DNA of 64,000 bases, taken from assembly GCA_943704425.1 (NCBI GenBank), contig CALSCP010001679.1, positions 83,430 through 147,429 on the forward strand, read 5' to 3'. Source of the stretch: Ministeria vibrans ATCC 50519 (taxonomy: Eukaryota; Protista; Filasterea). Positions 1,796 to 62,500 of this stretch are shown here, piece by piece. Under the pieces are notes generated by a model. The model had not been told where the DNA came from. It was given only the letters and a program-made list of their open reading frames with translations, and did not search any database. A program made the translations under genes and the position numbers. The first letter of the stretch is position 1; each line of letters starts with the position of its first letter.

Positions 1796-3241
1796 TTACA
1801 AATAGGGCAAAAGTGGCTCTCTCGTCTGCACTTTGCGCTCTCTCTTTTTGCGTTCCGTTTCCGTCAGCTCAGCCAATCGTACTTTGCGCTCCCACAAACT
1901 CACTTTCCGGCGCATTTCCGTCACTTCCCCCTTCAATCGCACATACTCAATCACATCGGGCGCTCGATGCGTTTCCCGCATTTTCCGCTCCCTCTCGTTC
2001 ACTCGTTCCGCTCTTTCCCGCTCCTTTTCCGCTCGACCTAATTCCGTCTCAATCCGTCCAATCAGATCTTTCCGCTGCTCCAACTCACTCTGGGCCCTTT
2101 CGCTCGTCCGCAGTGCTTGTTCTAGCTCCTCTTTCAGTCGCCCCAATTCCTGTACACCCAAATTAAGAATATAATATAATAACAATATTCATTAATTTTT
2201 ATTTTTATGATTGGTTCAATTTATTTTGTTGATTGTGTGTGTTTTAAATGTACCTTTTGTGACTTTGACGCAATCACTTTCAATCGACTCGTTTCTGCAT
2301 TTTTCTGCTTCACAATTTCATGTCGTTCATCAATTTCAATGCGCATCCGATCCATATCGACCGCATGAAGAACCTTAAAAAAAATTAATCATATTCGACT
2401 GTAACATCCATGTCATTTTTTTGTACCTCTCCCTTCTCCTCCTTTTCTTTGATCAATTGAAGCGTGCGCAAAATCTGTCCTCTCAGTGTTCCATTGCGCA
2501 AGCGCAGCTTTTCAATGGTTCCGTCGCGCTGGCGTTGCTTCTCTTCGTGAAAGCGGATGAGTCGCTCGGCCGACACTGCGCCACTTTGACTGGTGCCCTC
2601 CGCCGCCTTCCGCTCAAGACTACGACGGAAATCAAACTCAAACATGCGCTGATCCAGCGTGGACTGCTCGTGTTCTTCGCACACAGACCGAAGAGTCGAA
2701 ACCTACAAGTGAAATATACAATTATATTATAAGAATGATGATCAATGATGTAATGTTATTACTATCATTTATAATCATAATACTAAATGATTCTCTCTCT
2801 CCGATCTTCTTTACCTGTCGTTGCATCTGCTCCTTTGCTCTCTTGTGCAGCTTCTGAAGACGTTCAAGTTCCCCATCGGCAATGAGAAACTTCTGCTCAA
2901 ACGTCAGAGTGAGCTCGTCACACTGATCGTCCGAGACTGAATCAACAGTCTCGTGCATGCGCTGCTGTTCCTGCTCTCGCGACGCTGTCGACACATTGTC
3001 CCACGTTTCGTCGTCGTGCCCGCTTGCTAGATACGACTCAAAAAGTTGATTCTCAAGCTCAATCTCCTGCGAAATATATAAAAGCGATGGTTGCCAAGGA
3101 AACCAATGTGTGTGTGTTTGTTTTTACCTTATTGCGCCTTCGCGCATCCTCTAACATGGCCTCCAATTCACCCGTGGGGTACTGGTCCAACGTGGCCGTA
3201 AGGTCAACGAGTGTTTGCTCAGTTTCTTTGATTGATGTCAT
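1796..3241 (-). CDS. CCDC113: Cilia/flagella coiled-coil protein CCDC113/CFAP263 (DUF4201); exons 3241-3128, 3066-2815, 2702-2427, 2373-2254, 2149-1796
   Basis: Motifs ELENQLFESYL, LTFEQKFLIA, LHAVDMDRMRIE and PDVIEYV...SLWERKVRLAEL match the CCDC113 family. All introns are GT-AG and phase 0. Confidence 0.85.
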
Positions 3242-3308
3242 TGTACAAACAGAAAAAATAATAAAATCCAATCGATTATCAGAGAAGAAAAATTGTACAT
3301 TGTAGTGA

Positions 3309-6300
3309 TCAACTCTCTGGGTCCGTTCCGTACTCACTCTCGTCGGTGCTGAAATTCACATCGAGCAACGGCGCACTCAGCTCTTTCTTGACGACGTCGG
3401 CATACGTGAGCGGACACAACACTCCCTCTGCGTCTCCCACCGCCTCCTCCCCCTCCTTTGTGTTCTCGTCCACTTTCTCTGTCGGCATGGATGTGTTGCG
3501 TATCGTCTCAACACTCGCACGAATAGGACGGGGCAGGCAGAAGCGGAATGGGTAAAGGAGACGCGCAAGACGGAGGGTCTCCGACGAGTCCTGGAGCACG
3601 TCGCGCGCACAGCGAAATGCCTCGAGAAAGTGCGACATGTCACTCTGAAAGCACTCAGTGGTCAGTTTGTCGGGCGACGAGAGGGTAAAGAGCAAATTGG
3701 AATAGTGCATAACATAGCGACGGGTCGCAGTCAGACGCAGAGTGGCATCGACCATCAAGTGGCGCACAGTCGAGCGCAACAGGTCATTCTGCGCAAACCG
3801 CAGTCCGTCAAAGGTCAACAATGACTCCTCCACTAGCCCAAAGAGCAGTTCTTCTGTCTCCTCCACAGGCAGCGCAAAGACCGAGGCAGCCGCACACGGG
3901 TCAAACGGAGTGGCAAAGATCGAAAGAAGCATCATGGAACTCTGAACGAGAGAGAGAGTCAGTATATCACGAGATCGATGAAAGAGTGAAAAGGACCTTT
4001 TGCTCTTGTTCGAGCAGATTGAACGTCTCAATGAGCCCAATGGATTCGGCGAGTTTCGCTTTGGGGTGATCTGCAGACTCATCGGGCGCACTGAGGCGCG
4101 CAAGAACACCCTCAATGCGACTGAGTGAGAGGCGTTTAAGCTGCGAGCTGAGCACACGAATGGCAAGTGGGAGGAAAGACGCAGCACGAGCAAGTTGGAG
4201 GGACAGCGAAGCAGTTAGGGATGGTAGGAAATAATGCACGAGCGACAGACTAGTAAAAGTGATGGAGAAGGGAAAACGAACAGAGAGAGAGAAAGAGAGA
4301 ACGTGATGGAATTGAGTAAGTGATTGACTAAAGTGTGTGTTTTTCTACCTTGATTCCTCTGATAGCTCACCAATTCGCCTAAACCACACACACACAAAAA
4401 AAAAAACAATATTAAGCAAAAAATAATAATAACGATAACTTTGGTACAGATTGAGTGCGTTTGGCGCAAAAGACTCAATTTCAATGCGACGCCGCGATGT
4501 CACCAACACAAGAGCATCGTGTGCGCGCGGAAGAAGATCCTATGTTGACACACAACATTCATCATCAAACACCAAAAAAATTATTATGGTCAAAGTGCGT
4601 GACTCTTACAGTGACAAGAGAGAGATTGGAACAGTTTTCAATCACAAGAATTGAACGTTTTCCGCTAAACACGTGGTTGTATTCAGAGCGAATATGCCCA
4701 CTGTCCTTTCGATCAATGTGCTACAAGAGAGAAAATTCAATTCGATAAATTAAAACTTGATTCGTTTGATCACTTGTTTTACCTTTTCCGGGAATTTGGT
4801 GTGAATAATAATCGTCATAGCGTCTTCAATGGATAAATACTGGAGCAAAGATAGAGAGAGAGAGAAAGGAAGGAGAAAGAAACAAAGTGATAAAGAGAGA
4901 GAGAAAGAAAGGAAGGAGAAAGAAACATAGATAGAGAATAAGTAGTTAATCTATTGCAAAATCGACAAAATTAAAAGACGAATAATTTAATGTACTTTGT
5001 CGTTTTCAAACCCTTTGAGACTGACAAAGAGCCAATTGTGCGGGAAAATGGGTCTGAAACGCTCAGCCAATCTCTGAGCGAGAGCGGATTTACCCGCACC
5101 GGCAGGACCAAAGAGACAGACCACGTGACAGCTCACGCGCGAAGACGAAAAGACGCGCTGTTCAATCAACTAACAGACAGCAACAGAAAAGTAAGAAGGG
5201 ATAAGGAACAACAAAAAGAGATAGAGGAAGGCAGGGAGGGAGAAGAATCGTAAAGGAAGAGAAAACAAACGAGAAAGCGTGAGGGTCAAAATTGGCACAA
5301 TAATGAAACACACAAAGATAAATTAATACTACTAATCCTACATGACAATCAGGTAGATAGAAAAAACTTTACACGTAGTATTGTAAAATGACAACCCGGC
5401 ATAAAAAGGGGGTTTGTTTGTACCTTAATTTCGGATTCTCTGCCAACCAATTCCGGCGAGACAATCTCAGTGTCCTCATTCGCACTTGCGTTGACTTTCC
5501 ACGCGCGAGACAGTCTCTCTTGCACAAGTGACACATCTAGTACCTGAAATAGCCAATAATTAAAGAGGCTTCTGACGCTTCGGTGGATCAGATTGTGCTC
5601 TCACTTCAACAGAGCCGTCGCGTTTGATGAATGCGTGTCCTGTGTTGTTGAAGTAGACGGGCGAAATTCCCTTCGAGACATGAATCTCGAGAACAAAGAA
5701 GTCCGGTTGGTCGTCTGCGTTGTACTCGCGACGTCCCTTGCGCTGCTGCTGCTGGTGGTGCTTGGACGACGCAACTTCGTCAATGTACATCTCAATCTCG
5801 TCGTCGTGTAGTCGTGCGCCTTTGCGTCCCTTTTTGCTTTTGATTGGGGATGTGGGTGATCGAGCTTGCTGGGGATGGTGGGATCGTTGTACAGGTACAA
5901 GGCGGACGCGCAACAATGACGGATCAACCTACAACAGAGTCTGCACAGTGAACTTATCACTGGAGTTTCATACCTGAGGACGAAACTGCCCAATCTACAA
6001 AAGCGAATGCAACAAATGAGTCCAACGCACCCCCAATCGGTTGCCAGTGCACCCAAGTACCTGTGAGTCGATAGTCAAGTGGATGTCGTCGCGCTGCTTG
6101 CGCGTAAGCAGCATTCCGCGCACAACGCCATTGTCTACACACCACACGAACTCACATCGACCAAACACCCACTAAGCACCACATTCCGCGCACCTTCAAT
6201 GCCGCAGTACAACGTCCCGCCGTCCGTATTCTACAAAGACGCCCCAGGAGTCAGCCGCAGTGCCGTGGGAGCGCACAGAGAGCGTACGAGAAAGGCATTG

Positions 6301-6438
6301 ACATATTTCTTGACGTGCACAGCGACAAGACCCGACGTGCACCGCTTGAACTCATGGTACCGGTCCTCCTCCATCACCACTCGCTCCCCTTTGACATAGA
6401 AATCACGTTCGTCCATAACGACAAAAATTAGGAGAAAG

Positions 6439-6472
<34 letters not shown>

Positions 6473-7203
6473 GGCTGACACGAGAAAAAAAAAAGGAAGA
6501 ATAAGGAGTGAGACGTACGGATGGGGTCAGCGGGGAGGGAGGGGGGTAAGAAGTCGTGGAGGAAGTGGTGGTCCAAGTCCATGGGGTCGGGGTGGTCGGG
6601 GGCGGACAGGGGCGGACTGGCTGCCGCTGTCGTCGGGTTGGAGACGGAGCTGCGTCGGGAGCCAAAGCTCGACGGCGTCTCGTCGTGCGAGCAGCCCGCC
6701 GTCCATGCCCGCACGTCGCTCATCCGGTCGCACCACGACGCTACACCATCCCGTTAGTATTGCGCAGCCGATGAGTCACGCGATGAGAAACGCTTTAAAA
6801 AAAATTTTTTTTTCACACACACACACAGAGACAGAAGGAGACGCAACAACCACTCGGACTCCATACCGGTCTGTAGCATAGTGGTCCAGTACGCAGGGGC
6901 TGACGTGCTATCCGTGAAGGCGCCTTTCCTTCGTTTCTATAAGCAGAGTGTTTAATATATTCAGCGTGTCGCATTTTTTTTTTTTTTTTTGAAAAAGCAA
7001 TGAGGAGAGCGTACGGAGAGGGAATGAGGGAGGGAGGCAGGATCGACATCTTCGGGGGCAGCATCGTCGAAGGTAGACGAGCGGCGTTTGTGCGAGCGAC
7101 GGCACGAGATGGAGATAGGGAGACTCGAGCCAAAGGCGGGCGCGCGCTCTTCGGGCGGCGATGCGGACGTCCACGAGCCGCTCGAGGGCGAGGGGGTATC
7201 CAT
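3309..7203 (-). CDS. Schlafen AlbA_2 nuclease domain fused to an NB-ARC/AP-ATPase STAND NTPase and winged helix, ~835 aa; exons 7203-7015, 6936-6867, 6740-6519, 6388-6288, 6230-6194, 6134-6061, 5994-5974, 5928-5605, 5543-5424, 5169-4996, 4839-4783, 4720-4610, 4539-4448, 4378-4349, 4249-3997, 3941-3309
   Basis: The spliced frame reads EEDRYHEFK..KYVNAFL|NTDGGTLYCGIE|DNGVVRG..RDDIHLTIDSQ|IGQFRPQ|VDP..AFIKRDGSVE (AlbA_2). It continues LVGRESEI, Walker A GPAGAGKS, Walker B ILVIEN, sensor-1 LLP..VLVTSRR, LRIGELSEE, FLPLAIRV, and wHTH LSIF..PFD..AAASV..LVEESLL..RFAQNDLLR. Exon lengths sum to 2508 nt, in frame. The first three exons are less certain. Confidence 0.85.
6439..6471. repeat. Poly(A)/poly(T) tract inside an intron
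   Basis: About 33 consecutive A on the + strand. Confidence 0.9.
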
Positions 7204-7346
7204 GGAGGGCGCGGGGGGAGGGCTGTGGTGGACGGGTCTGTGGCTTGGTTGAGGCGATGGGGAGACAATATTTGATTGAAATAAGGATTCATTTATTTGG
7301 GATTTTGGGTCGAATGACAAATTATTATTGATAAAGGTTGACGATT

Positions 7347-7347
7347 T

Positions 7348-7378
<31 letters not shown>

Positions 7379-7408
7379 TAATAATAATAATAATAATAAT
7401 AATAATAG
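7347..7408. repeat. (AAT)n microsatellite, intergenic
   Basis: About 20 AAT units with one interruption. Confidence 0.95.
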
Positions 7409-7551
7409 TGTTATAATACGGCGGTCTATCCGCTGTCGGTGGAAGTATTGTGCTGCTCAGCCTGCTCTTTGTTTTGTACACGTTTTGTATGAACAGTATA
7501 GTACAATCTTACTTTTTTTCGTATTATAGAATACAATAATATTATTATGAT

Positions 7552-10500
7552 TTACATCCATTTGTGGGCATACGACGTGGCAAGTTTGGACCAAGAAGAG
7601 ACGGCGGAGCCCTTTGAAGAGGAAGCAGATGTCGCATCGCATACCGTCGAGATAACTTCGGATCGCTCTTCCGGACTAAACTTGAGCAGCTCTGCCAGCA
7701 CTGGCACCACTGCCGGTCGTCCCTTGGCATCCAATGCAAACTTCAACACCACATTCTGAAAAATAGAGAGAGAAATAAGGGAGACAAGCAAACAAAGTGA
7801 GTGAGAGAAAGAAAGAAAGGAAGGAGAAAGAAAGAAACAAGAGAGAAACAAAGTGATGGGAAAGAATCAAGATTATACAAAAGGGAATGAGAAAACCAAT
7901 GATCGAATAGTGAAATAAAATACTATAATTATATTATTACCTTGAGATACTCAAGGTTGACCGACTCCTCTTCGCGCTTGGCATTGCGCTCGAGGCGACG
8001 AATCTCCTCCTTGAGAACCTTCTCCTGCATCAATGCACGCCCCACATCTTGCTCATACTCATGGACCATTTCCCGCAGTCGCGCAATTTCCTCCCGCTCA
8101 GCCTCCGCCAGAGCCGCAGTGCCCTCATCATCGAGCCTTGTGCTACTCTGAGCTGAGTCGCGTCCTGTGCCATTGCGTACACCCTTTGTGAGCAGACGCG
8201 AAAGGAACACAGATGGGTTGAGCACAGCACCAGACAAGCGCGTGCTCTCCTGCGTCTCCGGCTCACGCCCACTTGTATCGTGCTCCTCCGCACTCGACTC
8301 AGATTCTACCCCACCCTTCTTCTTCTCCACACTCTGCTGCTGTCTCAATCGCTCCTGATCCCTCAACCGCTCCAACTGCTGCTGCAAGTCCACCGCCTCA
8401 CTGCGCATCTTCCGCACAAGCTCACCCGAACGCGTCTCCCGCTCCACAGCCTTGGCCTCGGCTGCCGTCACGCGCGCCCCCATTGCCGCCAACTCAGTCG
8501 CACGCGCACTCAATTCTCCTTCCATCTCGTGCATTCGCGTGCGATACTTGCCAGCCGCACTCTCACTCGTCACAACAAGTGCCTCGCGCGCTCGCACGGC
8601 CTCGTCCCGCTCTCGCTCCGCCCGCGACACCCGTTCCTCCACCTCCTCCTCGAGTGCCACCAGTCGCTCGCACGTTCGCTCCAGCTCCCCTCGTGTCACC
8701 GCCACTTCATTTTCCAACTCCCGTACGCGCCCCGTCGCCGCCACAAGTGCCTCAAGTGAGGTGCGCGACGTAGACGACAATGGTGTCGACGGTGCACTGC
8801 CAGACTCCACCACCACGACGCGTGTTGCCTCTCCCTCCGTCTCCACTGCCGCCTCCTCCACAACCGAAATGGTCTCGGCGTCCCGCTGTCGCTTAAGCAC
8901 TGCCTGAGCTCGCACCTGGTAACTGCGGTACTCCTCACGGACCCCGTCGAGCTCCTCTTGCACCTCCGTTGCGCGTTTCCGAGCGCTCCGCGCACCCAAC
9001 TCGGCCGACTCCAATTGCACCTGTAGCTGCGCTGTACTCTCAGCCGTCGTCACACGCAATACATCATACTCCTCACGCACCCGCTCATACTGCTCACGCG
9101 CCTCTGTTGCACTCGTCTCCATCACCGCCATCTTGCCTTTGAGGTCATCCACTTCCCGTTTGAGTCGCACGAGCAGGCCGCGCATTTTCGCTCCCTTGTC
9201 CGTTGTCTCCACATGCGCTGCAGTCTCTCCCGCCAACTTCTCCCGCAACACCCGTGCCTCCCCCTCCGCCGCATCACATGCACTTGTCTTTGCCGCCAAC
9301 TGCGCTGCAAGCGCCTCGACACTCCTCGAGGCGTCCTCCAACTCCAACTGCAACATCGACTGTGCACTCTGCACGCTGCTCGCCTGTCCTTCTTTCTCCC
9401 TTTCTAATTCCCCAATGCGTCGCGCGCTCACCTCCAACTCAGCCACAAGCGTTTCCACTCGTGCCTCAAGTGCACCACACTCGCGCATTTTCTCCTCCAC
9501 ACTGCCCTCCAGTGTCCCCACAAGTCGCTCGGCCGTCGCAGCGCGTTCCTCTATAGCACTTGAAACAGCTTGGGTCTCGTGCATCGCCCGCTCGTGCGCC
9601 TCACTCGTCTCTTCCAGCTCGCGCACTCGCGTACGTAAAAGCCCAATTTCTTCTTCAGTGGGCGCCACACTAGTTGTGAGTGGAGTCTCATCGACTGTTC
9701 TCCGGTCACTCAGTTGCGCCTCCAGCTCTGCAATGCGCGACTCGCTCGTCTGCTGTTCTTCCTCAAGTCGCGCCTCTAGCTCTGCAATGCGCGAATCACT
9801 CGTCTGTCGTTCTTCCTCAAGTCGTGCCTCCAGCTCTGCAATGCGCGACTCGCTCGTCTGCTGTTCTTCAAGTCGCGCCTCCAGCTCTGCAATGCGCGAA
9901 TCACTCGTCTGTCGTTCTTCCTCAAGTCGTGCCTCCAATGCAGCAACGTCCCCAACACTCGCCAACAGTCCCTCTTTGGCGCGCGTCGTTTGGGCCTCGG
10001 CAGTCGTGAGCGCCTCTTGCAGAGCAATGAGAGCCGCACCGTCGTGTTCGATCGCACCGTCGCCCTCCGCTTCCTTCTCCTCGACAGGCGATCTCCTTTG
10101 CAGGGCCTTAATTTCATCCTGCAATGCCGCAATCTTCTCTTCGGCAGCTGTGGCAGCTGTGGCAGCAGCAAGCGTGGTACTGGCAGCGAGTGCCTGTGAC
10201 TGGGCGAGCGACTCTTCGAGGTGCTTGATGCGATGCGCATCCTCAACCTGCTCTGCTGCGGCCGCCTCAAGACGTTCGACGGTCTCTTGGCGAAGCCTCC
10301 GCTCCGACTCAAGCTCGGCGCTCTTCTCTTGCAAGTCGCTCTTTGTGTTGGCCAGAGTTTGCTTCAGCGTGAGCAGTGCACGCTTCATTTTCGCATTGAG
10401 ATCATTGACGCGTGTTAGTTCTGCGTCCGGCACTGTTGCGTCAGCTGTCGTTGTAGTTGTAGGGGTAGCGGAAGGATGAGAAGAAGAGGACGAGGCGGCG

Positions 10501-15118: not shown

Positions 15119-18100
15119 ATGACAACATCGGCACAGACGCCCGCCATGACGGGCCACAAATACGCAATTGTCATCGGACGAACATTTTTCAACTCGAACA
15201 CGCTCGAGCTTGATACGCTACCAGGGGTCGGGGCGACGGTGCGCAACATGGCGGTTGNNNNNNNATGACGGGCCACAAATACGCAATTGTCATCGGACGA
15301 ACATTTTTCAACTGGAACACGCTCGAGCTTGATACGCTACCAGGGGTCGGGGCGACGGTGCGCAACATGGCGGTTGACCTTGTGCGCAACGGGTTTAAGA
15401 CGGTCGTGCTCGCAGACACGCGCATGGCGCTGTCGCAGCGCTCGTTCGACTCGCCGACGCTGGAACAACACTACGTCGACTTTGCGGTCGATGCGACGCA
15501 GACGCAGAAGCTGTCGTGGGTGCAGGCGGACACGACACGCCCACACATCCGCACGGCACTCGTTGGCCTGGCTGCCATGGGCTCTGGGCACCTGCCGGGT
15601 CCGCTCGACGACTTGGTCATTTACATCTGCTCGCACGGCGTCCTCAACGCCAGCGACGGCTCGTACGGCGCAGCACTCGCCGACGTGCGCTGCACCAAGC
15701 CGAGTGTCACCGATGCGAACGGCGACGTTGTGCACCCCGCCCAGTATGCCGACGCGTACACGATGGAGCAGTTGCGCGACGACTTGTGCGTCGAGCAAGA
15801 GCAGCGCTGGCGCAACACTCTTGTGGTGCTCGACACGTGCCACTCGGGAGGGGCGTTTGATGCGACGGAGGTGTCGTTGCGCGACTGTGGCACGCAGAAC
15901 ACGCACGACATGCAGAGGGTGTTCCAGAAGGAGTCGTACCAGTGCTTGGCGGCGGTGCCCTGTTCTGCGTCGGCGTTTTGTCTGGAGCGCGGCACGGTGC
16001 TGCACATGGCGCTGCGACGAGCATGGCTGTCGCCTGGTGGCGATGGTGGGGCGTTTGCGCGAGCGCGCGAGGGAGCGGCGCGGTGGGCGACAATTGGACG
16101 CGTGGCGGACCGTGTCAATGTGGAACTGACGTCGCTGATGACGGAGATTGTGCAGAAGATGCCGGCGCATCTGAAGGAGCCGGACGACGCGTACTTCTTC
16201 CGACAGACGTGTCTGTTGGGCCGACTGCCGTGGCGCGTGGCGCACAACACGGGGGAGTTTGTGGTGTTCAACGGGAAGTACACGGAGCGCAACAAGCTGG
16301 CCATGGTGCCTGGTGTGCCGGCGAGTTTCACGGGACGCGCGAAGGAGTTGAGGCAGTTGGAGGCGCGACTGAAGCAAAGTGGGACTGCGGCGATTGGGAA
16401 CGTGACGGTGTCGGCTGCGGGCGGAGTGGGCAAGAGCACACTGGCAGCGGAGTATGCGCGACGGAATGCGCATGAGTACCACTGGATCGTTTGGGTGCGG
16501 GCAACGAGTGCGACGACGATGATGGGATCGTATCGGGAGGCAGTGCGGTACATTCCACTGAAGCATGTGGATTTAGCGAACGCAACGAATGAAGAGGTGG
16601 TGGGGGCAGTGAAGGAGTGGCTGGCGCACGAAGGAGGATGGTTGATGGTGATGGACGGATGTGATGCGATCACAGAGGAGATGAGTGAGATGATGCCCGG
16701 TGGCGTGATGGAGGGGAAGGTGGTTGTGACGACACGATTGCGTCGTGTGGATGAGTTGGGGGCGTTGTTTGGAGGAGGAGATGCACCGTTGCAGTTGGGG
16801 GTGTTTGACGAGGAGGAGGGAATGGAGTACATGCGCAAGCGACTGGCGGGTCGAGCAGATGAAGATGAGGAGGTGCAGAAGATTGTTGCAAGGTTGGGAG
16901 GAATGCCACTGGCGCTTGAGTTGGCGGCAGCATATCTGGTGGAGACGCCACATGTGAGTGCTGGAGAATATGGCGCACGGATGGAGACAGACATATTGGG
17001 GACGTTGAAGAGGCGGAATGGAGCAGGGGGGTTGGAGGATCGTGTTGTGGCGACGTACGAGCCGGGTGTTGCTCGGGCGATGGAGATTGGCGGGCGGGAG
17101 ATGGTGCGGAAGATGGTTGGAGTGATGGGGTTTTTGGAAGGGAGTGGGATGGAGGTGGAGGTGCTGCGGCTGGTCGTGGTGGGGGAAAGGAAGAAGGAGA
17201 AGGTGGAGGAAGACGAGTTTGACGTTGCACTTGGTGCGTTGTGTCGACTGTGTGTGGTTGATGTGAGCAAGAGTGTGGTGTCGATGCATCAGTTGGTGCA
17301 GGATGTGTGTCGGGTGGTGGCATTTGGAGATGAGGAGGAGATGTGGAGGGAGTTGCAGAGGATGGGGAGCGTGTTGGAAGAGGAGATTGGCAAAGATGCA
17401 CATATTTATGAGGATATGGAGTGGAGTCGACGCGTGGGAGTGCATGGAACGCGAGTGATGGAGTGGGCGTGTGCTGAGGTGGGGAGAAGGCGGAGGGGTG
17501 GAGAGACGGAGGAGTACGGCGATGGTGTGGTGTGGCTGGGAATTCGGCTGAGTGTCGTGTGGAGATTTTTGGGAATGTATAAGTTGGCTCGGAGTGCGGC
17601 TGAGAGTGCGTGTGATTGTGTGTGTGATAAGAGGTGTGCGCTTGCTGGGAGTGCGTTTGGGACTCTAGGCGATGTTTGCAAGTACCAAGGGGAGTATACG
17701 CGAGCGTTGGAGGTGTATGGTTGGGCAGTTGCGATTCAAGAAGAGAAGCTGGGGACAGATCATGCTGAGACTGGCGACACATTGAACAACATGGCCATTG
17801 TGTTTCGGGCACAAGGAGACTACAGTCGTGCTCTTGAGTACTATGAGCGTGCTCTGACCATCTGTGAGAAGTCTGTTGGTCCCGACCACCCATCCACAGG
17901 CGACACATTGAACAACATGGCTGTTGTGTTTGAGGCACAAGGAGACTACAGTCGTGCTCTTGAGTACTATGAGCGTGCTCTGACCATCCGTGAGAAGTCT
18001 GTTGGTCCCGACCACCCGTCCACAGGCGACATATTGAACAACATGGCCATTGTGTTTCGGGCACAAGGAGACTACAGTCGTGCTCTTGAGTACTATGAGC

Positions 18101-19770
18101 GTGCTCTGACCATCTGTGAGAAGTCTGTTGGTCCCGACCACCCGTCCACAGGCGACATATTGAACAACATGGCCATTGTGTTTCGGGCACAAGGAGACTA
18201 CAGTCGTGCTCTTGAGTACTATGAGCGTGCTCTGACCATCTGTGAGAAGTCTGTTGGTCCCGACCACCCGTCCACAGGCGACATATTGAACAACATGGCC
18301 ATTGTGTTTCGGGCACAAGGAGACTACAGTCGTGCTCTTGAGTACTATGAGCGTGCTCTGACCATCTGTGAGAAGTCTGTTGGTCCCGACCACCCGTCCA
18401 CAGGCGACATATTGAACAACATGGCCATTGTGTTCGAGGCACAAGGAGACTACAGTCGTGCTCTTGAGTACTATGAGCGTGCTCTGACCATCCGTGAGAA
18501 GTCTGTTGGTCCCGACCACCCATCCACAGGCACCACATTGAACAACATGGCGAATGTGTTCAAGGAACAAGGAGACTACAGTCGTGCTCTTGAGTACTAT
18601 GAGCGTGCGCTGACCATCAAAGAGAAGTCTCTTGGTCCCGACCACCCATCCACAGGCAACACATTGAACAACATGGCGAACGTGTTCAAGGCACAAGGAG
18701 ACTACAGTCGTGCTCTTGAGTACTATGAGCGTGCTCTGACCATCCGTGAGAAGTCTGTTGGTCCCGACCACCCATCCACAGGCAACACATTGAACAACAT
18801 GGCTGGTGTGTTCCAGTTACAAGGAGACTACAGTCGTGCTCTTGAGTACTATGAGCGTGCTCTGACCATCTTTGAGAAGTCTGTTGGTCCCGACCACCCA
18901 TCCACAGGCCAGACATTGAACAACATGGCCATTGTGTTCGAGGCACAAGGAGACTACAGTCGTGCTCTTGAGTACTATGAGCGTGCTCTGACCATCAAAG
19001 AGAAGTCTCTTGGTCCCGACCACCCATCCACAGGCACCACATTGAACAACATGGCGAATGTGTTCAAGGAACAAGGAGACTACAGTCGTGCTCTTGAGTA
19101 CTATGAGCGTGCGCTGACCATCAAAGAGAAGTCTCTTGGTCCCGACCACCCATCCACAGGCAACACATTGAACAACATGGCGAACGTGTTCAAGGCACAA
19201 GGAGACTACAGTCGTGCTCTTGAGTACTATGAGCGTGCTCTGACCATCCGTGAGAAGTCTGTTGGTCCCGACCACCCATCCACAGGCAACACATTGAACA
19301 ACATGGCCATTGTGTTTCGGGCACAAGGAGAATACAGTCGTGCTCTTGAGTACTATGAGCGTGCTCTGACCATCAAAGAGAAGTCTCTTGGTCCCGACCA
19401 CCCATCCACAGGCCAGACATTGAACAACATGGCCATTGTGTTCGCGGCACAAGGAGATTACAGTCGTGCTCTTGAGTACTATGAGCGCGATCTGGCCATC
19501 TGTGAGAAGTCTCTTGGTCCCGACCACCCATCCACAGGCCAGACATTGAACAACATGGCTGGTGTGTTCCATGCACAAGGAGACCGAACTCGTGCCCTCG
19601 ACTATTGGCAACGTGCTTTGACCATCCGTGAGAAGTCTCTTGGCCCCGACCACCCGCACACCAAGCAAACCCGCAAGTCCCTCAGTGCCCTCCATCCTAC
19701 CGCACAACCCGCATGCCTCACCAACTCAACGAAGCCCCCAAACCAATCTGCCGACTGTATCATACTTTAA
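15119..19770 (+). CDS. NLR-like protein: caspase-like peptidase C14, NB-ARC/STAND, 15+ TPR repeats (42 aa) and a C-terminal CaaX. Intronless; the 5' end is duplicated across a gap, and the intact ORF runs 15265-19770.
   Basis: His/Cys dyad VIYICSHG...VVLDTCHSG. STAND motifs FTGR, Walker A AAGGVGKST, WLMVMDG, VVVTTR, GGMPLAL and SMHQLVQ. Kinesin-light-chain-type TPR units TLNNMA.VF..QGDYSRALEYYERALTI.EKS.GPDHPS. Ends CIIL*. Confidence 0.93.
15146..15376. other. 112-bp direct duplication flanking the N gap at 15258-15264 (probable scaffolding overlap)
   Basis: 15146-15257 equals 15265-15376 except for one base (TCG vs TGG codon). Confidence 0.85.
17770..19659 (+). repeat. Tandem array of 15 x 126-bp TPR-coding units
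   Basis: Exact 126-nt period. Units 3-5 are identical in protein, and units 7-8 recur as 11-12. Confidence 0.97.
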
Positions 19771-19841: not shown

Positions 19842-20734
19842 TCATTCATCGCCCGCCAAAGGCACAAACATCGATCTCTCGCGCGCTTCGGGTTTCTCCA
19901 ACTCAAAATGGTACATCAGACGAAACACAAGGGCTGCCACAGCAGACACGAGAAAGAGCAGTGAGCCGACACAGAATTGCCACACTCCCGCAACTTCCAC
20001 AGAGGCAAACAGAAAGCAGGTGGACCCAGTCACAAAGAGCACACAGCCCACAATAGTCGCCGTGAAGGCCGCCATGTGCACCCAGTGGTACCGTTGCAGC
20101 GACGCCGGCGGGATCGTCGAGAGCACCCGATCCGCCCGACACCAATCGACCATCGCCACCACCACATAGTACGCTGAGTCCACAATGAAGATATATGTGC
20201 CCGTGCGCGTCGCTTTGGGCCCCTCCTTGGGAAAGAACAGACAGCTGCCAATAAAGAAGCCAAAGTTGGCAACGCAGTAGAGCAAGGGCAGTCGCTCGAC
20301 AGGCACGCGCGGTCGCTGAGTCGTCGTCAGGAGCCACTGCTCTGCGCCTTCATCGTCGTCTGGCTGCGACCCACTCGGGCGGTACAGCTCAATCCAGTCC
20401 CACGTGCTCGCCATCAGAAAGGCCAGCGACCCGATAATGAACAGATCCACACCTGCAGCAGAAGGAGATGAGCAAAAGCGGAACGTGGCAACAAAAGCGA
20501 AAACGGGATTGAGCGACACCCAACCGATTGTGTCGTACCGATTCCCTCGAGATGAGCAAAGCGCGGAAAGAACAAGACGGAGCCTATGATGAAGGCCAAG
20601 GAGCCAATGACATACAGGCAGCCGTTGCCCAGGTGCGCGGCCAGGCGGTCGGCCTGTGGCAGCAGCAACAGTGCACTGGCACATCGCATCTGCCGTGTCG
20701 TCTCATTTGACCCTCGCGCGTCTTCCGCCGACAT
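19842..20734 (-). CDS. Multi-pass membrane protein with three YrhK-like helical hairpin repeats; exons 20734-20539 and 20452-19842
   Basis: Repeated F(I/V)xGSxLF/GxxxFIxGS motifs (AFIIGSVLFFP..G|VDLFIIGSLAF; FFIGSCLFFP; FVTGSTCFL..GVWQFCVGSLLF). One GT-AG intron restores the frame. Confidence 0.75.
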
Positions 20735-59129: not shown

Positions 59130-59495
59130 ATGATTCATTGCGTTTGGGTGGGTCTTCTTTTCGCTCTGGCCCGAACGACCACCGTCGATGCATTTTGCGA
59201 AAGCAGCCCCTGCACCATGCATGGGTTTTGCGACGAGGCCCTTGCCGTGTGCGACTGCGATGCAGGCTACACGGGCGTTGCGTGCGAATCCTTTTTTGAC
59301 ATTTGCCTTTCGTATCCCTGTCAAAACGACGCACGCTGCATTCGCGGCACCAACGCAACCACCAAGGAGAATCAGCTTGTTGACATTGATCCCTACCAGA
59401 CGGGAGACGATACGCTCTTTGGCGCAGGCATATTTTCCAGTTCGCGGTATCGATTTTTTTTTTTCCCTTTCTTCCCCCCTTTTTTTTTTTTTTCC

Positions 59496-59532
<37 letters not shown>

Positions 59533-62500
59533 CTCATTAGACAACGCCTTCTTCTCCCGGCCTCTCTCCTCTCCGTTGTGGGCCTTGCAAGTGGACCCAT
59601 CCACTCGTTGGCCTACAACGTCCGCGACTTCGACGGCTCAGTTTCAGAGACGACCATCAAAATTGCGCGAGTCGACTCGACCGTCACGGAACTCACATAC
59701 AATCTCTCTGCCATCGTCCTCTCGTTCACAACCGTCGCCGCGCTCACCAATCCTCCCTCTGGCATTGGCTGGCGCACCCACCTCTTCAACGTGCAGCCGT
59801 TTGTCTACGACGGACGAAGCGGGCTCGTGTTCGAGCTGTGTTTCCGCGCAAGTGCCGACGCGCGCCACTTGGTGCAGTCTGTGGACATTCCGGGAGGGAA
59901 CCTCGGCTTCTTTACCAAATCACTTGAACCTGCTTGCTCGGTGACGTCCAACCCCTTTCTTGTGCGCGACGCTCCTGTGTTGCGCCTCAACGCAACCGTA
60001 GTAGAGCCGCAGAGCGCCAACGCTCAGCTCTTCAGCTGTGTGTGTCTCGCAGGGTACACGGGAGCCGTGTGCGAGACGGACGTGGACGAGTGTGCGTCAA
60101 GTCCGTGCACCAACGGCGCCACTTGCACCGACGAAATCGACCAGATTACCTGCACGTGTCCACTTGGCTTTGTCGGCGCTGCGTGCGAGACGGACATTGA
60201 CGAGTGCGAGTCGTCGCCCTGCTCCAATGGCGGTTCTTGCTCTCAAGGTTCCAGCACCGACCTATTTCAGTGCTTTTGCGCGGCCGGCTTTACCGGAATT
60301 ATGTGCGAGACGGACTTGAACGAGTGTGCATCCAACCCTTGTGTCAATAATGGCACGTGCTCGCAGAGTAGTACACCCGATATGTTTGTGTGTGCGTGTC
60401 CAGCGGGCTTTACGGGTGTTTGCTGCGAGAGTGATGTCGACGAGTGTGCATCGTCACCCTGTGCCAACGGCGCATCGTGTTTGCACGCTGTTGGTGTTGA
60501 TGCTTTTGCCTGTGCATGTGCAACAGGCTTTACTGGCTCGCGGTGCGAGACTGACTTGGACGAGTGTGCCTCGTCGCCGTGCCTCAACGGAGCAGCTTGC
60601 CACCAGGGAGCGGCACCCAACTTGTTTGTGTGTGTGTGCTTGGGCGGCTACACAGGAGATGTGTGCGAGACGGACGTGGACGAGTGTGCGTCGAGTCCGT
60701 GCAGCAACGGCGCCACTTGCACCAACACAGTCAACCAGTTTATCTGTCTGTGTGCGTCTGGGTATTCTGGGAACCAGTGCGAGACGGACATTGATGAGTG
60801 TGCAAGCTCACCTTGCGATACGGGACGGTGTGAAAATGCTCTTGGTGGCTTCTTATGTCACTGCCCCGCTCGCTATGTGGGGCGCACTTGCAGTGTGGAA
60901 GAGATAGCGCCTTTACTTGTCGGTTCGTTTGCGGGAACCATTGCATTTATTGTCTTGGGTGTAGTTGCCTGGAAGCTCCAACAAAGATTCTACTGCTTTC
61001 TTAACATGCGCCAAGTGCACACATTTATGTTGCGTCTTTCACCGTCCATTTACCCAGAAGTGGACGACACCGGCCAAGGGCAACTCTTTTCTGTTGGCAG
61101 CAATGTTAACTCCTTTTTCATCCACCTTATCACTCCTTTGACTGTCATTAACCTACTATTCTGCAAAATTGTTGTACGGCCCACTCCGCAAAATACTAAT
61201 ATTCGGCTTATTCCTGGCGCCATAAAAGTAACCCGAAACTGCACTATTTTAAAATGCGAGCGCTTCAACGAAGTGGGAATAGCTGGGCCGTTTGTCGCCA
61301 AGATTTTGAAAAGCGAAAATCCTGAAGTCCTCGCTGCTAATAAGTAAGTCTTCAATGAATATTAATAATAATGACAGTACTATAATAATAATAATACTAA
61401 TTATTACTATTATTATTATTGTTATTATTATTATTATTATTAATTTATTCTTATAATTATTATTATTCTATTATTATTATTATTATTTCAAGAAATGAAA
61501 TTTCAATGACGCGACGATTGGGACTATTTTCCAAGTACTGTGTGCACATAATGGGATTTGCCAAGTGCCCAATCTTAAACAACATCACCGAGAAGATTAT
61601 TGTTATGCCGTTTTACCGCAACGGGTCTTTGGAGGTAAACAGAAACGACAAACACAAACAAGAATAAGGTCCATGTCCATTGTCCATGTCAACTTTCCTC
61701 ACATAATAATAATAAGAAGAAGAAGAAGAGGAAGAAGAATATAACCCATTAATTATTAATGATACAATCATGATAATAATCATGATAATAATAATAATAA
61801 TAATATTGTTATTGTTTTTTGCCTGGTTTGTATTTTTTTCAGAACTTTCTGTACACATCAAACCAAACGTCCACCGAAACCGTAAACTTTGAAAAACGGG
61901 TAAGGAACAACTGTGAACATTAAACAAAATATTGGACCTTTTGATTGGTGTTTGTAGCTTTCATTTGCCTGTCAGATTCTTGAGGCAGTGGCATATTTGC
62001 ACTCGTTCAAGATTGTGCATCGGTACCAAAAAGAATAAATTTAGAATGACTTACTTTCGTCTCTTGCGCTATAATTATGTACTGATTATCTTCATAGCGA
62101 TTTGGCGCTGCGCAATGTGATGGTAAGTGACGATGGTTTACGAGTTCTTCTCTTTGACTACGGCCTGTCGTGGTTAATCTCGGAGACTACAGACGGTGAA
62201 CGAATTAGGTAGCAACACACACAATTCTCCCATGAATCTCAAATCTAATTGAGATCTGCTTATATTTCTCCCATAGCGCTTCAGCATTGGCGCGCCTTCC
62301 ACCCGAAGCGGATCCATGGTTGAGGGATGTGTGCCATGCTCAAATTTCACTCAAGGACAATTTAGAGAAACAACTAGAGACGAGTTCCGAGGCGATATCA
62401 GACATGGTGATGAAGGAAAACAAAATCTACCGGCACGGTGTCACGTTGACCGCATCCGACATGTACAACCTCGGCATTCTATTGTGGTGCATGTTTCGTA

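Follow-up and report, generated by a model that had tools for sequence, protein, structure and literature searches.

The window analysed here, a stretch of 64,000 nucleotides from contig CALSCP010001679.1 of Ministeria vibrans ATCC 50519, contains a complete, intron-free open reading frame (ORF) that ends in an array of tetratricopeptide repeats (TPR). The encoded protein is a single-chain caspase-fold/NB-ARC/TPR protein of the STAND type. It has the tripartite layout of effector, nucleotide-binding oligomerisation domain (NOD) and repeats, with the caspase fold at amino acids 1-345, the NB-ARC module at 360-700 and the TPR region at 795-1466 (Table 1). The Pfam profile PF00931 (NB-ARC) matched amino acids 360-559 with 44.6 bits against a cut-off of 23.5 (E 1.4e-11), and the P-loop, Walker B, TTR (sensor), GxP-type and MHD-type motifs were all invariant in nine paralogs. 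Across the array, the Pfam profiles TPR_12 and TPR_10 scored 1017 and 684 bits, respectively. The AlphaFold2 (AF2) model of the TPR region, with a predicted local distance difference test score (pLDDT) of 87, consists of alternating helices of 16 and 18 residues, helix A running from P40 to A13 of the repeat and helix B from Y17 to S34. Its nearest structures in Foldseek were KLC1, OGT and consensus TPR superhelices (CTPR). That the array forms the sensor-type domain at the C-terminus of an NLR-like STAND protein is supported.

The N-terminal domain had no Pfam match at E values up to 1, the Peptidase C14 profile PF00656 included, and no PDB sequence match was obtained even with a profile of nine sequences. 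As there was no caspase match at the sequence level, the assignment needed a fold search. When an AF2 model built from nine paralogs (pLDDT 72) was used in Foldseek, the top matches were MALT1 paracaspase and caspase-7 and -3 (E about 1e-7), and caspase-1 and legumain were also found. The E values of 2.5e-7 to 1e-5, the probability of 1.0 and the template modelling (TM) scores of 0.55-0.63 by target place the domain in the caspase-hemoglobinase fold. The nearest clusters in the ESM Atlas were bacterial Peptidase_C14. A putative catalytic dyad is formed by the His of SHG (His124) and the Cys of DTCHSG (Cys192), which follow the predicted strands 116-128 and 184-191 of the AF2 model.

Table 1 Positions of the features in the window (position 1 is the first nucleotide of the stretch)
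Feature	Position	Strand	Evidence or remarks
Intron-free, complete ORF, 1501 aa	15265..19770	+	Caspase-fold domain, NB-ARC, TPR array and short tail; ORF list, translation, Pfam
N-terminal caspase-fold domain, aa 1-345	15265..16299	+	Putative His124 (SHG) and Cys192 (DTCHSG); AF2 and Foldseek, Atlas
NB-ARC/STAND NTPase module	16342..17364	+	PF00931; motifs GGVGKS 386, LMVMDG 460, TTR 489-491, GMPLAL 546, MHQ 674
Degenerate capping TPR unit (unit 0)	17647..17772	+	Partial hidden Markov model match; 46 % nucleotide identity to unit 1; helical in AF2
15 TPR units of 126 bp/42 aa, unit 15 diverged	17773..19662	+	Hypervariable codons 2, 9, 12, 31; moderately variable codons 3, 13, 35
C-terminal tail and stop codon, ending in CIIL (CaaX-like)	19663..19770	+	Translation
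YrhK-like gene, convergent	ORF 19842-20684	-	Pfam YrhK, E 2e-20
GT-AG intron of 86 nt in the convergent YrhK-like gene	20451-20536	-	Spliced and unspliced run contigs compared
Giant intron-free ORF, 3217 aa	21238-30891	-	FN3 and disintegrin-like matches
Giant intron-free ORF, 9043 aa	31659-58790	+	Almost no Pfam matches
EGF-repeat protein	59188-61347		

An earlier, sequence-only reading of this DNA had described 15 near-identical units of 126 bp. The array was recovered as such by Tandem Repeats Finder (TRF; a single array at 17773-19655 that comprises 14.9 copies of period 126, with 92 % matches and without indels) and as 15 in-frame units of 42 amino acids at 126-bp spacing, with the motif LNNMA recurring every 42 residues exactly. 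The units are numbered here from G1 to T42, which equals the positions of that reading minus one, since it began one codon earlier. The nucleotide identity among units 1-14 averaged 92.7 % (87-100 %), and unit 15 was 78 % identical to the other units. At the amino acid level the mean identity was 86.9 % for all 15 units (630 amino acids) and 88.9 % for units 1-14. Extra changes had been noticed in the last units; unit 15 is diverged, and a degenerate capping unit precedes unit 1. The triplication of units 3-5 and the recurrence of units 7-8 as 11-12 were both found as identical sequences (units 3 = 4 = 5, 7 = 11 and 8 = 12), and these places coincide with exact internal repeats of 319 bp (at an offset of 126) and 298 bp (at an offset of 504). 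The description of the units as near-identical even at synonymous sites was too strong: the proportion of synonymous differences (pS) in the scaffold of units 1-14 was 0.09, so that synonymous sites are not invariant. These differences came mostly from codon 40 and from codons 8 and 11, the latter two following the variable codons next to them.

The variation between the units is focused at the sites to which the earlier reading had pointed. The residues found were D/N/Q/T at position 2, T/I at 3, I/N/G/V at 9, R/K/E/Q/A/H at 12, A/E/L at 13, C/R/K/F at 31 and V/L at 35. Fifteen of the 23 variable nucleotide columns of units 1-14 fall within these seven codons (hypergeometric p = 2e-9, with the codons picked post hoc). 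The genome assembly (29.7 Mb, 2860 contigs) offered a wider sample. It contains at least 15 near-full-length paralogs of the N-terminal 836 amino acids, with 45-93 % identity, and 29 loci were found in an NB-ARC search. The 126-bp unit is present on about 40 contigs and harbours at least 24 contig ends, a clear sign that the assembler had difficulty with this repeat. A set of 76 full units from 16 arrays was assembled, 61 of them from 15 arrays outside the window. In this set the entropy per codon was 2.3-2.4 bits at codons 2, 9, 12 and 31, about 1 bit at codon 35, 0.6-0.8 bits at codons 3, 13, 29 and 37 and near zero at the remaining codons. Codons 2, 9, 12 and 31 also ranked top in the 61 outside units alone, which removes the post hoc element of the test made in the window.

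Selection was assessed by Nei-Gojobori pairwise counting, using uncorrected proportions and a bootstrap over units. The proportion of nonsynonymous differences (pN) at the four hypervariable codons (69 unique units) was 0.50, compared to a pS of 0.144 over all 42 codons, i.e. a ratio of 3.5 (bootstrap 2.9-4.2), while the 35 scaffold codons had a pN of 0.040, a pS of 0.152 and a ratio of 0.27 (0.20-0.34). Correction for multiple hits would raise the ratio of 3.5. The excess of pN over pS that the sequence-only reading had anticipated at the variable codons, across units and paralogs, was thus clearly present; we regard these ratios as strong indications rather than as a formal test.

The positions of the Pfam TPR_1 and TPR_2 profiles coincide with the unit positions used here, and the unit numbering is therefore the canonical TPR numbering. 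In TPR proteins, positions 2, 5, 9, 12, 13, 33 and 34 are hypervariable on the concave face (Magliery and Regan, PMC1261162). In HOP, the ligand is contacted by positions 2, 5, 6, 9, 12 and 13, and the peptide backbone is bound by Asn6 (PMC1261162). The closest solved homologue of the array is the TPR domain of KLC1 (E 1e-45), which aligns with it unit for unit. The published contacts of KLC1 with JIP1 and TorsinA peptides (PMC6214655) correspond to unit position 2 (K340), positions 5 and 6 (the Asn pairs), position 9 (V305 and L347), position 12 (R266), position 13 (K309 and N351) and position 31 (R327), a conversion that was checked against the residue letters of the alignment. Positions 2, 9, 12 and 31, together with 13, are consequently specificity contacts in the nearest structure, and the variable codons coincide in register with ligand-contact positions of TPR proteins, as had been expected. 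In the alignment, the invariant Asn5-Asn6 of the units corresponds to the backbone-binding ladder of KLC1. A further proposal, that each repeat contributes its own modular piece of a binding code, found no support; in the solved TPR-peptide complexes, neighbouring repeats jointly hold each ligand residue.

The scaffold identity between arrays (0.85-0.98) equalled that within arrays (0.80-0.99). When compared to the window gene, all but one of the six paralogs had a TPR scaffold pS of 0.135-0.18, the exception being C1832 with 0.29 (2 units). The N-terminal pS of the six paralog pairs ranged from 0.095 to 0.66, and the TPR scaffold pS did not track it; the group with flat TPR pS includes C2371, the N-terminus of which is unrelated. 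A flat TPR pS despite a rising N-terminal pS indicates exchange between loci and not recent duplication. The repeats are thus homogenised by concerted evolution, as the earlier reading had it, with a largely flat TPR pS across loci. Nearest neighbours were found within the same array in modest excess (0.30 compared to 0.095, p = 0.003). The diverged end units fit unequal crossing-over.

The variable sites were mutually unlinked, even codons 9 and 12, which are 9 bp apart, and 62 distinct four-site codes were present in the 76 units, in line with the earlier observation that variants reassort between units. The variants of codon 9 were linked to the synonymous state of codon 8 (Cramer V 0.87, p = 0.001): of 21 units with ATT at codon 9, 19 had GCC at codon 8, and GCT was found in 38 of the 39 units with GGT, GTT or TGT. 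Comparable linkage was seen for codon 30 with 31 and for codon 11 with 12. Linked synonymous neighbours combined with free reassortment imply that the variants are shared by descent between the loci and reshuffled in very short tracts, and do not arise by recurrent mutation. A diversity-generating retroelement was considered and rejected, as the variant codons differ at all four bases, often at two or three positions, and are shared by descent. There was also no template-like second copy beside the gene.

The closest copy of the window gene lies on a 3.2-kb contig (C1077, 1-3213), one end of which falls in the repeat and the opposite end at the start of the gene. Over the caspase-NB-ARC part this copy has 95 % identity to the window gene, and it may represent either a recent paralog or the second allele. 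Thirteen of the 16 variant letters seen in independent runs agree with C1077, and its variants were present in three independent runs, so that the copy is real. None of its first five TPR units (0/5) shares a variable-site code with the units of the window; the turnover of the variable-site code is fast. The gene on C2371 (21500-30500; ORFs 2763-3371 and 3416-7720), which is split over two frames, gave weak Roc/Ras-type GTPase matches below the Pfam cut-offs. It carries ten TPR units near-identical to those of the window (93 % scaffold identity), and its N-terminus is only 21 % identical. On C2583 and C1883, TPR units of the family occur in two reading frames a few hundred bases apart, which points to frameshifted pseudogenes or to errors of assembly in part of the arrays.

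No close relative was found in a search with the full protein, and bacterial and fungal NB-ARC-TPR proteins matched with only 24-31 % identity. A profile search gave 146 proteins below 1e-30. The closest protein outside the genome, P0129 from an ENA metagenome contig (890 amino acids), matched the NB-ARC part with E 3e-212 and has about ten TPR units of the same type, which are mutually diverged and not of the type with high internal conservation (HIC). The family thus has non-homogenised members or relatives as well. Metagenome scans with the N-terminal protein and with the 42-nt invariant segment of the unit gave no matches.

Two further observations concern the ends of the gene. The CaaX-like ending CIIL is common to three members of the family, i.e. 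the window gene (19756-19767), C1193 and C1997 (...DCIIL, ...TCIIL), and the tails of the other paralogs are unrelated to it. The motif suggests prenylation and membrane attachment of these proteins. A 119-bp tandem duplication (two copies, 93 %; TRF) at 15146-15377 covers the start codon of the gene, and a contig of run X13 joins 15145 to 15265, i.e. has one copy fewer, which suggests a strain difference.

The gene is transcribed. In the sequencing run X1, the 86-nt intron of the minus-strand neighbour had been removed (20450 joined to 20537), as also in X13; in X2 it was unspliced. As the intron is spliced out in X1, this run represents RNA, and exact pieces of X1 are specific to the window paralog (e.g. 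16814-16986), with no mismatch where C1077 differs. One X1 contig extends from unit 15 through the stop codon of the TPR gene into the convergent YrhK-like gene, so that the two transcripts either overlap at their 3' ends or were merged there. Runs containing the sequence include algal-culture and seawater metagenomes. The genome has three integrin-beta domain genes and spliced genes, and the window has the giant EGF, FN3 and disintegrin proteins of Table 1. No light-harvesting complex (LHC) genes were found in the fragmented assembly, which makes an alga such as Nannochloropsis unlikely as the source. A search with a GAPDH exon gave one metagenome match of 100 % and matches of about 80 % from animals and bacteria; as the spliced GAPDH of an annotated genome such as that of Thecamonas or Capsaspora should have ranked as the top named match, these are unlikely as well. 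An integrin-beta ORF had no match at E values up to 1e-20. By this context the organism is a marine heterotrophic protist and not a fungus.

Repeats are classed as HIC when they are at least 85 % identical across at least 100 amino acids (Dyrka 2014, PMC4986451); the array of the window reaches 86.9 % over 630 amino acids. We consider it likely that this array is the ligand-sensing domain of a caspase-fold/NB-ARC/TPR STAND protein of the HIC class, in which the scaffold is homogenised, the contact codons are diversified and the variants are shuffled, with an output in defence or cell death. Unequal crossing-over and short-tract gene conversion, both inside the array and between the arrays of the genome, of which there are at least 16, would hold the 35 scaffold codons near-identical, and diversifying selection would keep many residues at codons 2, 9, 12 and 31 and fewer at 3, 13 and 35. 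The variable codons would line the concave peptide-binding groove next to the invariant Asn5-Asn6 ladder, and the shuffling of old variant codons into new combinations would give each array a distinct binding surface. By analogy with other STAND proteins, activation may occur by ligand-induced oligomerisation: ligand binding would release the NB-ARC module for oligomerisation, the caspase-like domains would thereby come close to each other, and their proximity would result in proteolysis, probably as part of a defence or cell-death response. The existence of a ligand and a role in immunity or allorecognition are what we infer from these properties.

Several points weigh against this interpretation. 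The pN/pS ratios were obtained by counting differences between pairs of repeats that recombine, which does not amount to a phylogenetic site test. Neither position 3 nor position 35 belongs to the known contact positions, and the mapping of position 31 depends on a single homologous complex. Protease activity is probably not universal in the family: the putative caspase His is absent in paralog C2675 (GRG for SHG) and the Cys in C837 (LDSSQIG for LDTCHSG), and paralogs that have lost such a residue, as judged from their sequences, may represent a protease-dead part of the family. The number and order of the units come from one assembly that is broken at this repeat in at least 24 places. It is possible, if rather unlikely, that short reads from many near-identical arrays were mixed, so that the order, the copy number and some of the combinations are not real. 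The unit occurs on about 40 contigs with the ends just mentioned, the exact repeats of up to 319 and 298 bp coincide with the reported duplications, and no public contig spans the array, including the Logan contigs of four runs, which are fragmented by the paralogs and none of which bridges it. According to the Podospora literature, the reconstruction of HIC domains requires long reads (PMC13449251). On the other hand, codons 2, 9 and 12 lie within 30 bp and are unlinked at the scale of single reads, the same codons are variable in 16 arrays, and the frame is kept over 1.9 kb in an ORF of 1501 amino acids with unique flanks on both sides in one large contig. The pattern of variation at read scale is independent of the number and order of the units.

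The target could also differ from a pathogen, the receptor serving conspecific allorecognition (in fusion or mating) or guarding an endogenous protein; to this we give a smaller chance. The best-studied HIC NLRs (het-e, het-d, het-r and het-z of Podospora) are allorecognition genes (PMC13449251), and nothing within the window points to a pathogen. For allorecognition, however, no cell fusion biology is known for this protist, and the at least 15 paralogs with different arrays resemble a repertoire more than a single polymorphic het locus. It is improbable that relaxed constraint is sufficient, with seven surface codons drifting while conversion homogenises the rest of a scaffold or regulator protein that is not a variable receptor. 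Surface positions of TPR proteins are generally variable (PMC1261162), but neutral pN should approach pS, and the observed ratio at the hypervariable codons was 3.5, with an interval of 2.9-4.2. Conversion tracts would have homogenised these codons as well unless diversity was favoured, and each site has a restricted set of residues while other exposed helix positions are invariant. A recent burst of gene duplication, in place of concerted evolution, is highly improbable as the reason why units at different loci are so alike. In its favour, the nearest copy (C1077) shows 95 % identity throughout, but the TPR scaffold pS was 0.14-0.18 also where the N-terminal pS was 0.47-0.66 and the amino acid identity 21-69 % (C2371 included). 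Simple recent duplication was rejected on this flat TPR pS against a rising N-terminal pS.

The preferred interpretation of the array as an HIC-type sensor may be extended to a caspase-armed, NLR-like repertoire in a unicellular marine eukaryote that is neither fungus, plant nor animal. Its TPR sensors would be continually rebuilt by exchange of very short tracts, with breakpoints under 10-20 bp, that draws on old variant codons pooled across the genome, possibly also during clonal growth. In this extended form the proposal is a long shot, only slightly less doubtful than relaxed constraint. If true, it would describe a gene-conversion-based system of receptor diversification in a protist that is common to NB-ARC and Roc-type signalling proteins.

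Beyond plants and animals, no other proteins are such good candidates for intracellular receptors of immunity or allorecognition that evolve fast as the HIC NLRs, but work on them has been almost confined to fungi. In the compact genome described here there are about 29 NB-ARC genes, a single 42-residue unit is the common building block of at least 16 arrays, and the effector resembles a caspase. These properties support homogenisation of the scaffold with diversification of the contact residues as a general solution for receptor repertoires, and connect this design, within one chain, to an executioner of the caspase type. The linkage between neighbouring codons, together with reassortment at 9-57 bp, provides a concrete handle on the mechanism of exchange.

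The closest solved structures to the array by sequence are KLC1 and KLC2 (PDB 3NF1, 6FUZ and 3ZFW; E 1e-45, 33-37 % identity), with 42-residue units in register. In these, the Asn5/Asn6 pairs hold the peptide backbone and contacts at positions 2, 9, 12, 13 and 31 give specificity. KLC differs in having six diverged repeats without an NTPase or protease, and is a conserved cargo adaptor with neither homogenisation nor hypervariability. The NB-ARC-TPR proteins of Ectocarpus (Zambounis et al. 2012, PMC3341825), which the sequence-only reading had named as a parallel, are likewise candidate receptors of protist grade, with shuffling of repeats between paralogs and variable positions. The likeness is a loose one. 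The NB-ARC-TPR layout and the repeat shuffling are shared, whereas in Ectocarpus each TPR has its own exon, diversity involves exon shuffling and internal conservation is weak. The array of the window is very homogeneous and lies in a single exon, one uninterrupted ORF stretch of 1890 bp, and was therefore not assigned to the exon-shuffled class. The bacterial conflict systems of the caspase/CHAT-STAND-repeat type (Kaur et al. 2020, cited in PMC13449251) also combine a caspase fold, a STAND NTPase and repeats that form superstructures, some of them HIC; CHAT-ATPase-HIC examples are given in Fig. 8c of PMC13449251. Bacterial NB-ARC-TPR proteins are the nearest full-length matches, with an NTPase identity of only 24-31 %; the window gene, in contrast, is in a eukaryotic genome, with spliced neighbours and an expanded family of paralogs.

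The comparison with fungal NLRs, also made in the earlier reading, is the accurate one, and the array fits their HIC class. Fungal NLRs have HIC TPR units of 42 amino acids, with polymorphism in repeat number and selected sites on the concave face as modelled on KLC2 (Dyrka et al. 2014, PMC4986451). TPR repeats are exchanged between divergent NLR genes, and HIC NLR-like proteins, the CHAT-ATPase-repeat type included, are present across every domain of life (Ament-Velasquez et al. 2026, PMC13449251). The fungal HIC NLRs (e.g. Podospora anserina Pa_2_10340, PaPnt1/Pa_7_3550 and het-z) have, like the window gene, an NB-ARC followed by 42-residue TPR units of the KLC type that are more than 85 % identical. 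Further properties in common are a small number of hypervariable codons under positive selection at the concave face, exchange of repeats between divergent paralogs, the occurrence of one repeat type on different N-terminal modules and the failure of short-read assembly. The effector is a caspase fold here, compared to HET, HeLo, patatin or sesB in the fungi, and repeats are exchanged throughout the family (16 arrays, with equal similarity between and within arrays), whereas in Podospora the repeats of most TPR genes are specific to the gene. The receptor design was thus already known from fungal NLRs and is here found in a previously unsampled lineage; besides the lineage, it is the caspase-fold effector in the same chain, the sharing of units throughout the family, a Roc-type gene included, and the shuffling of old codons that distinguish the present system.

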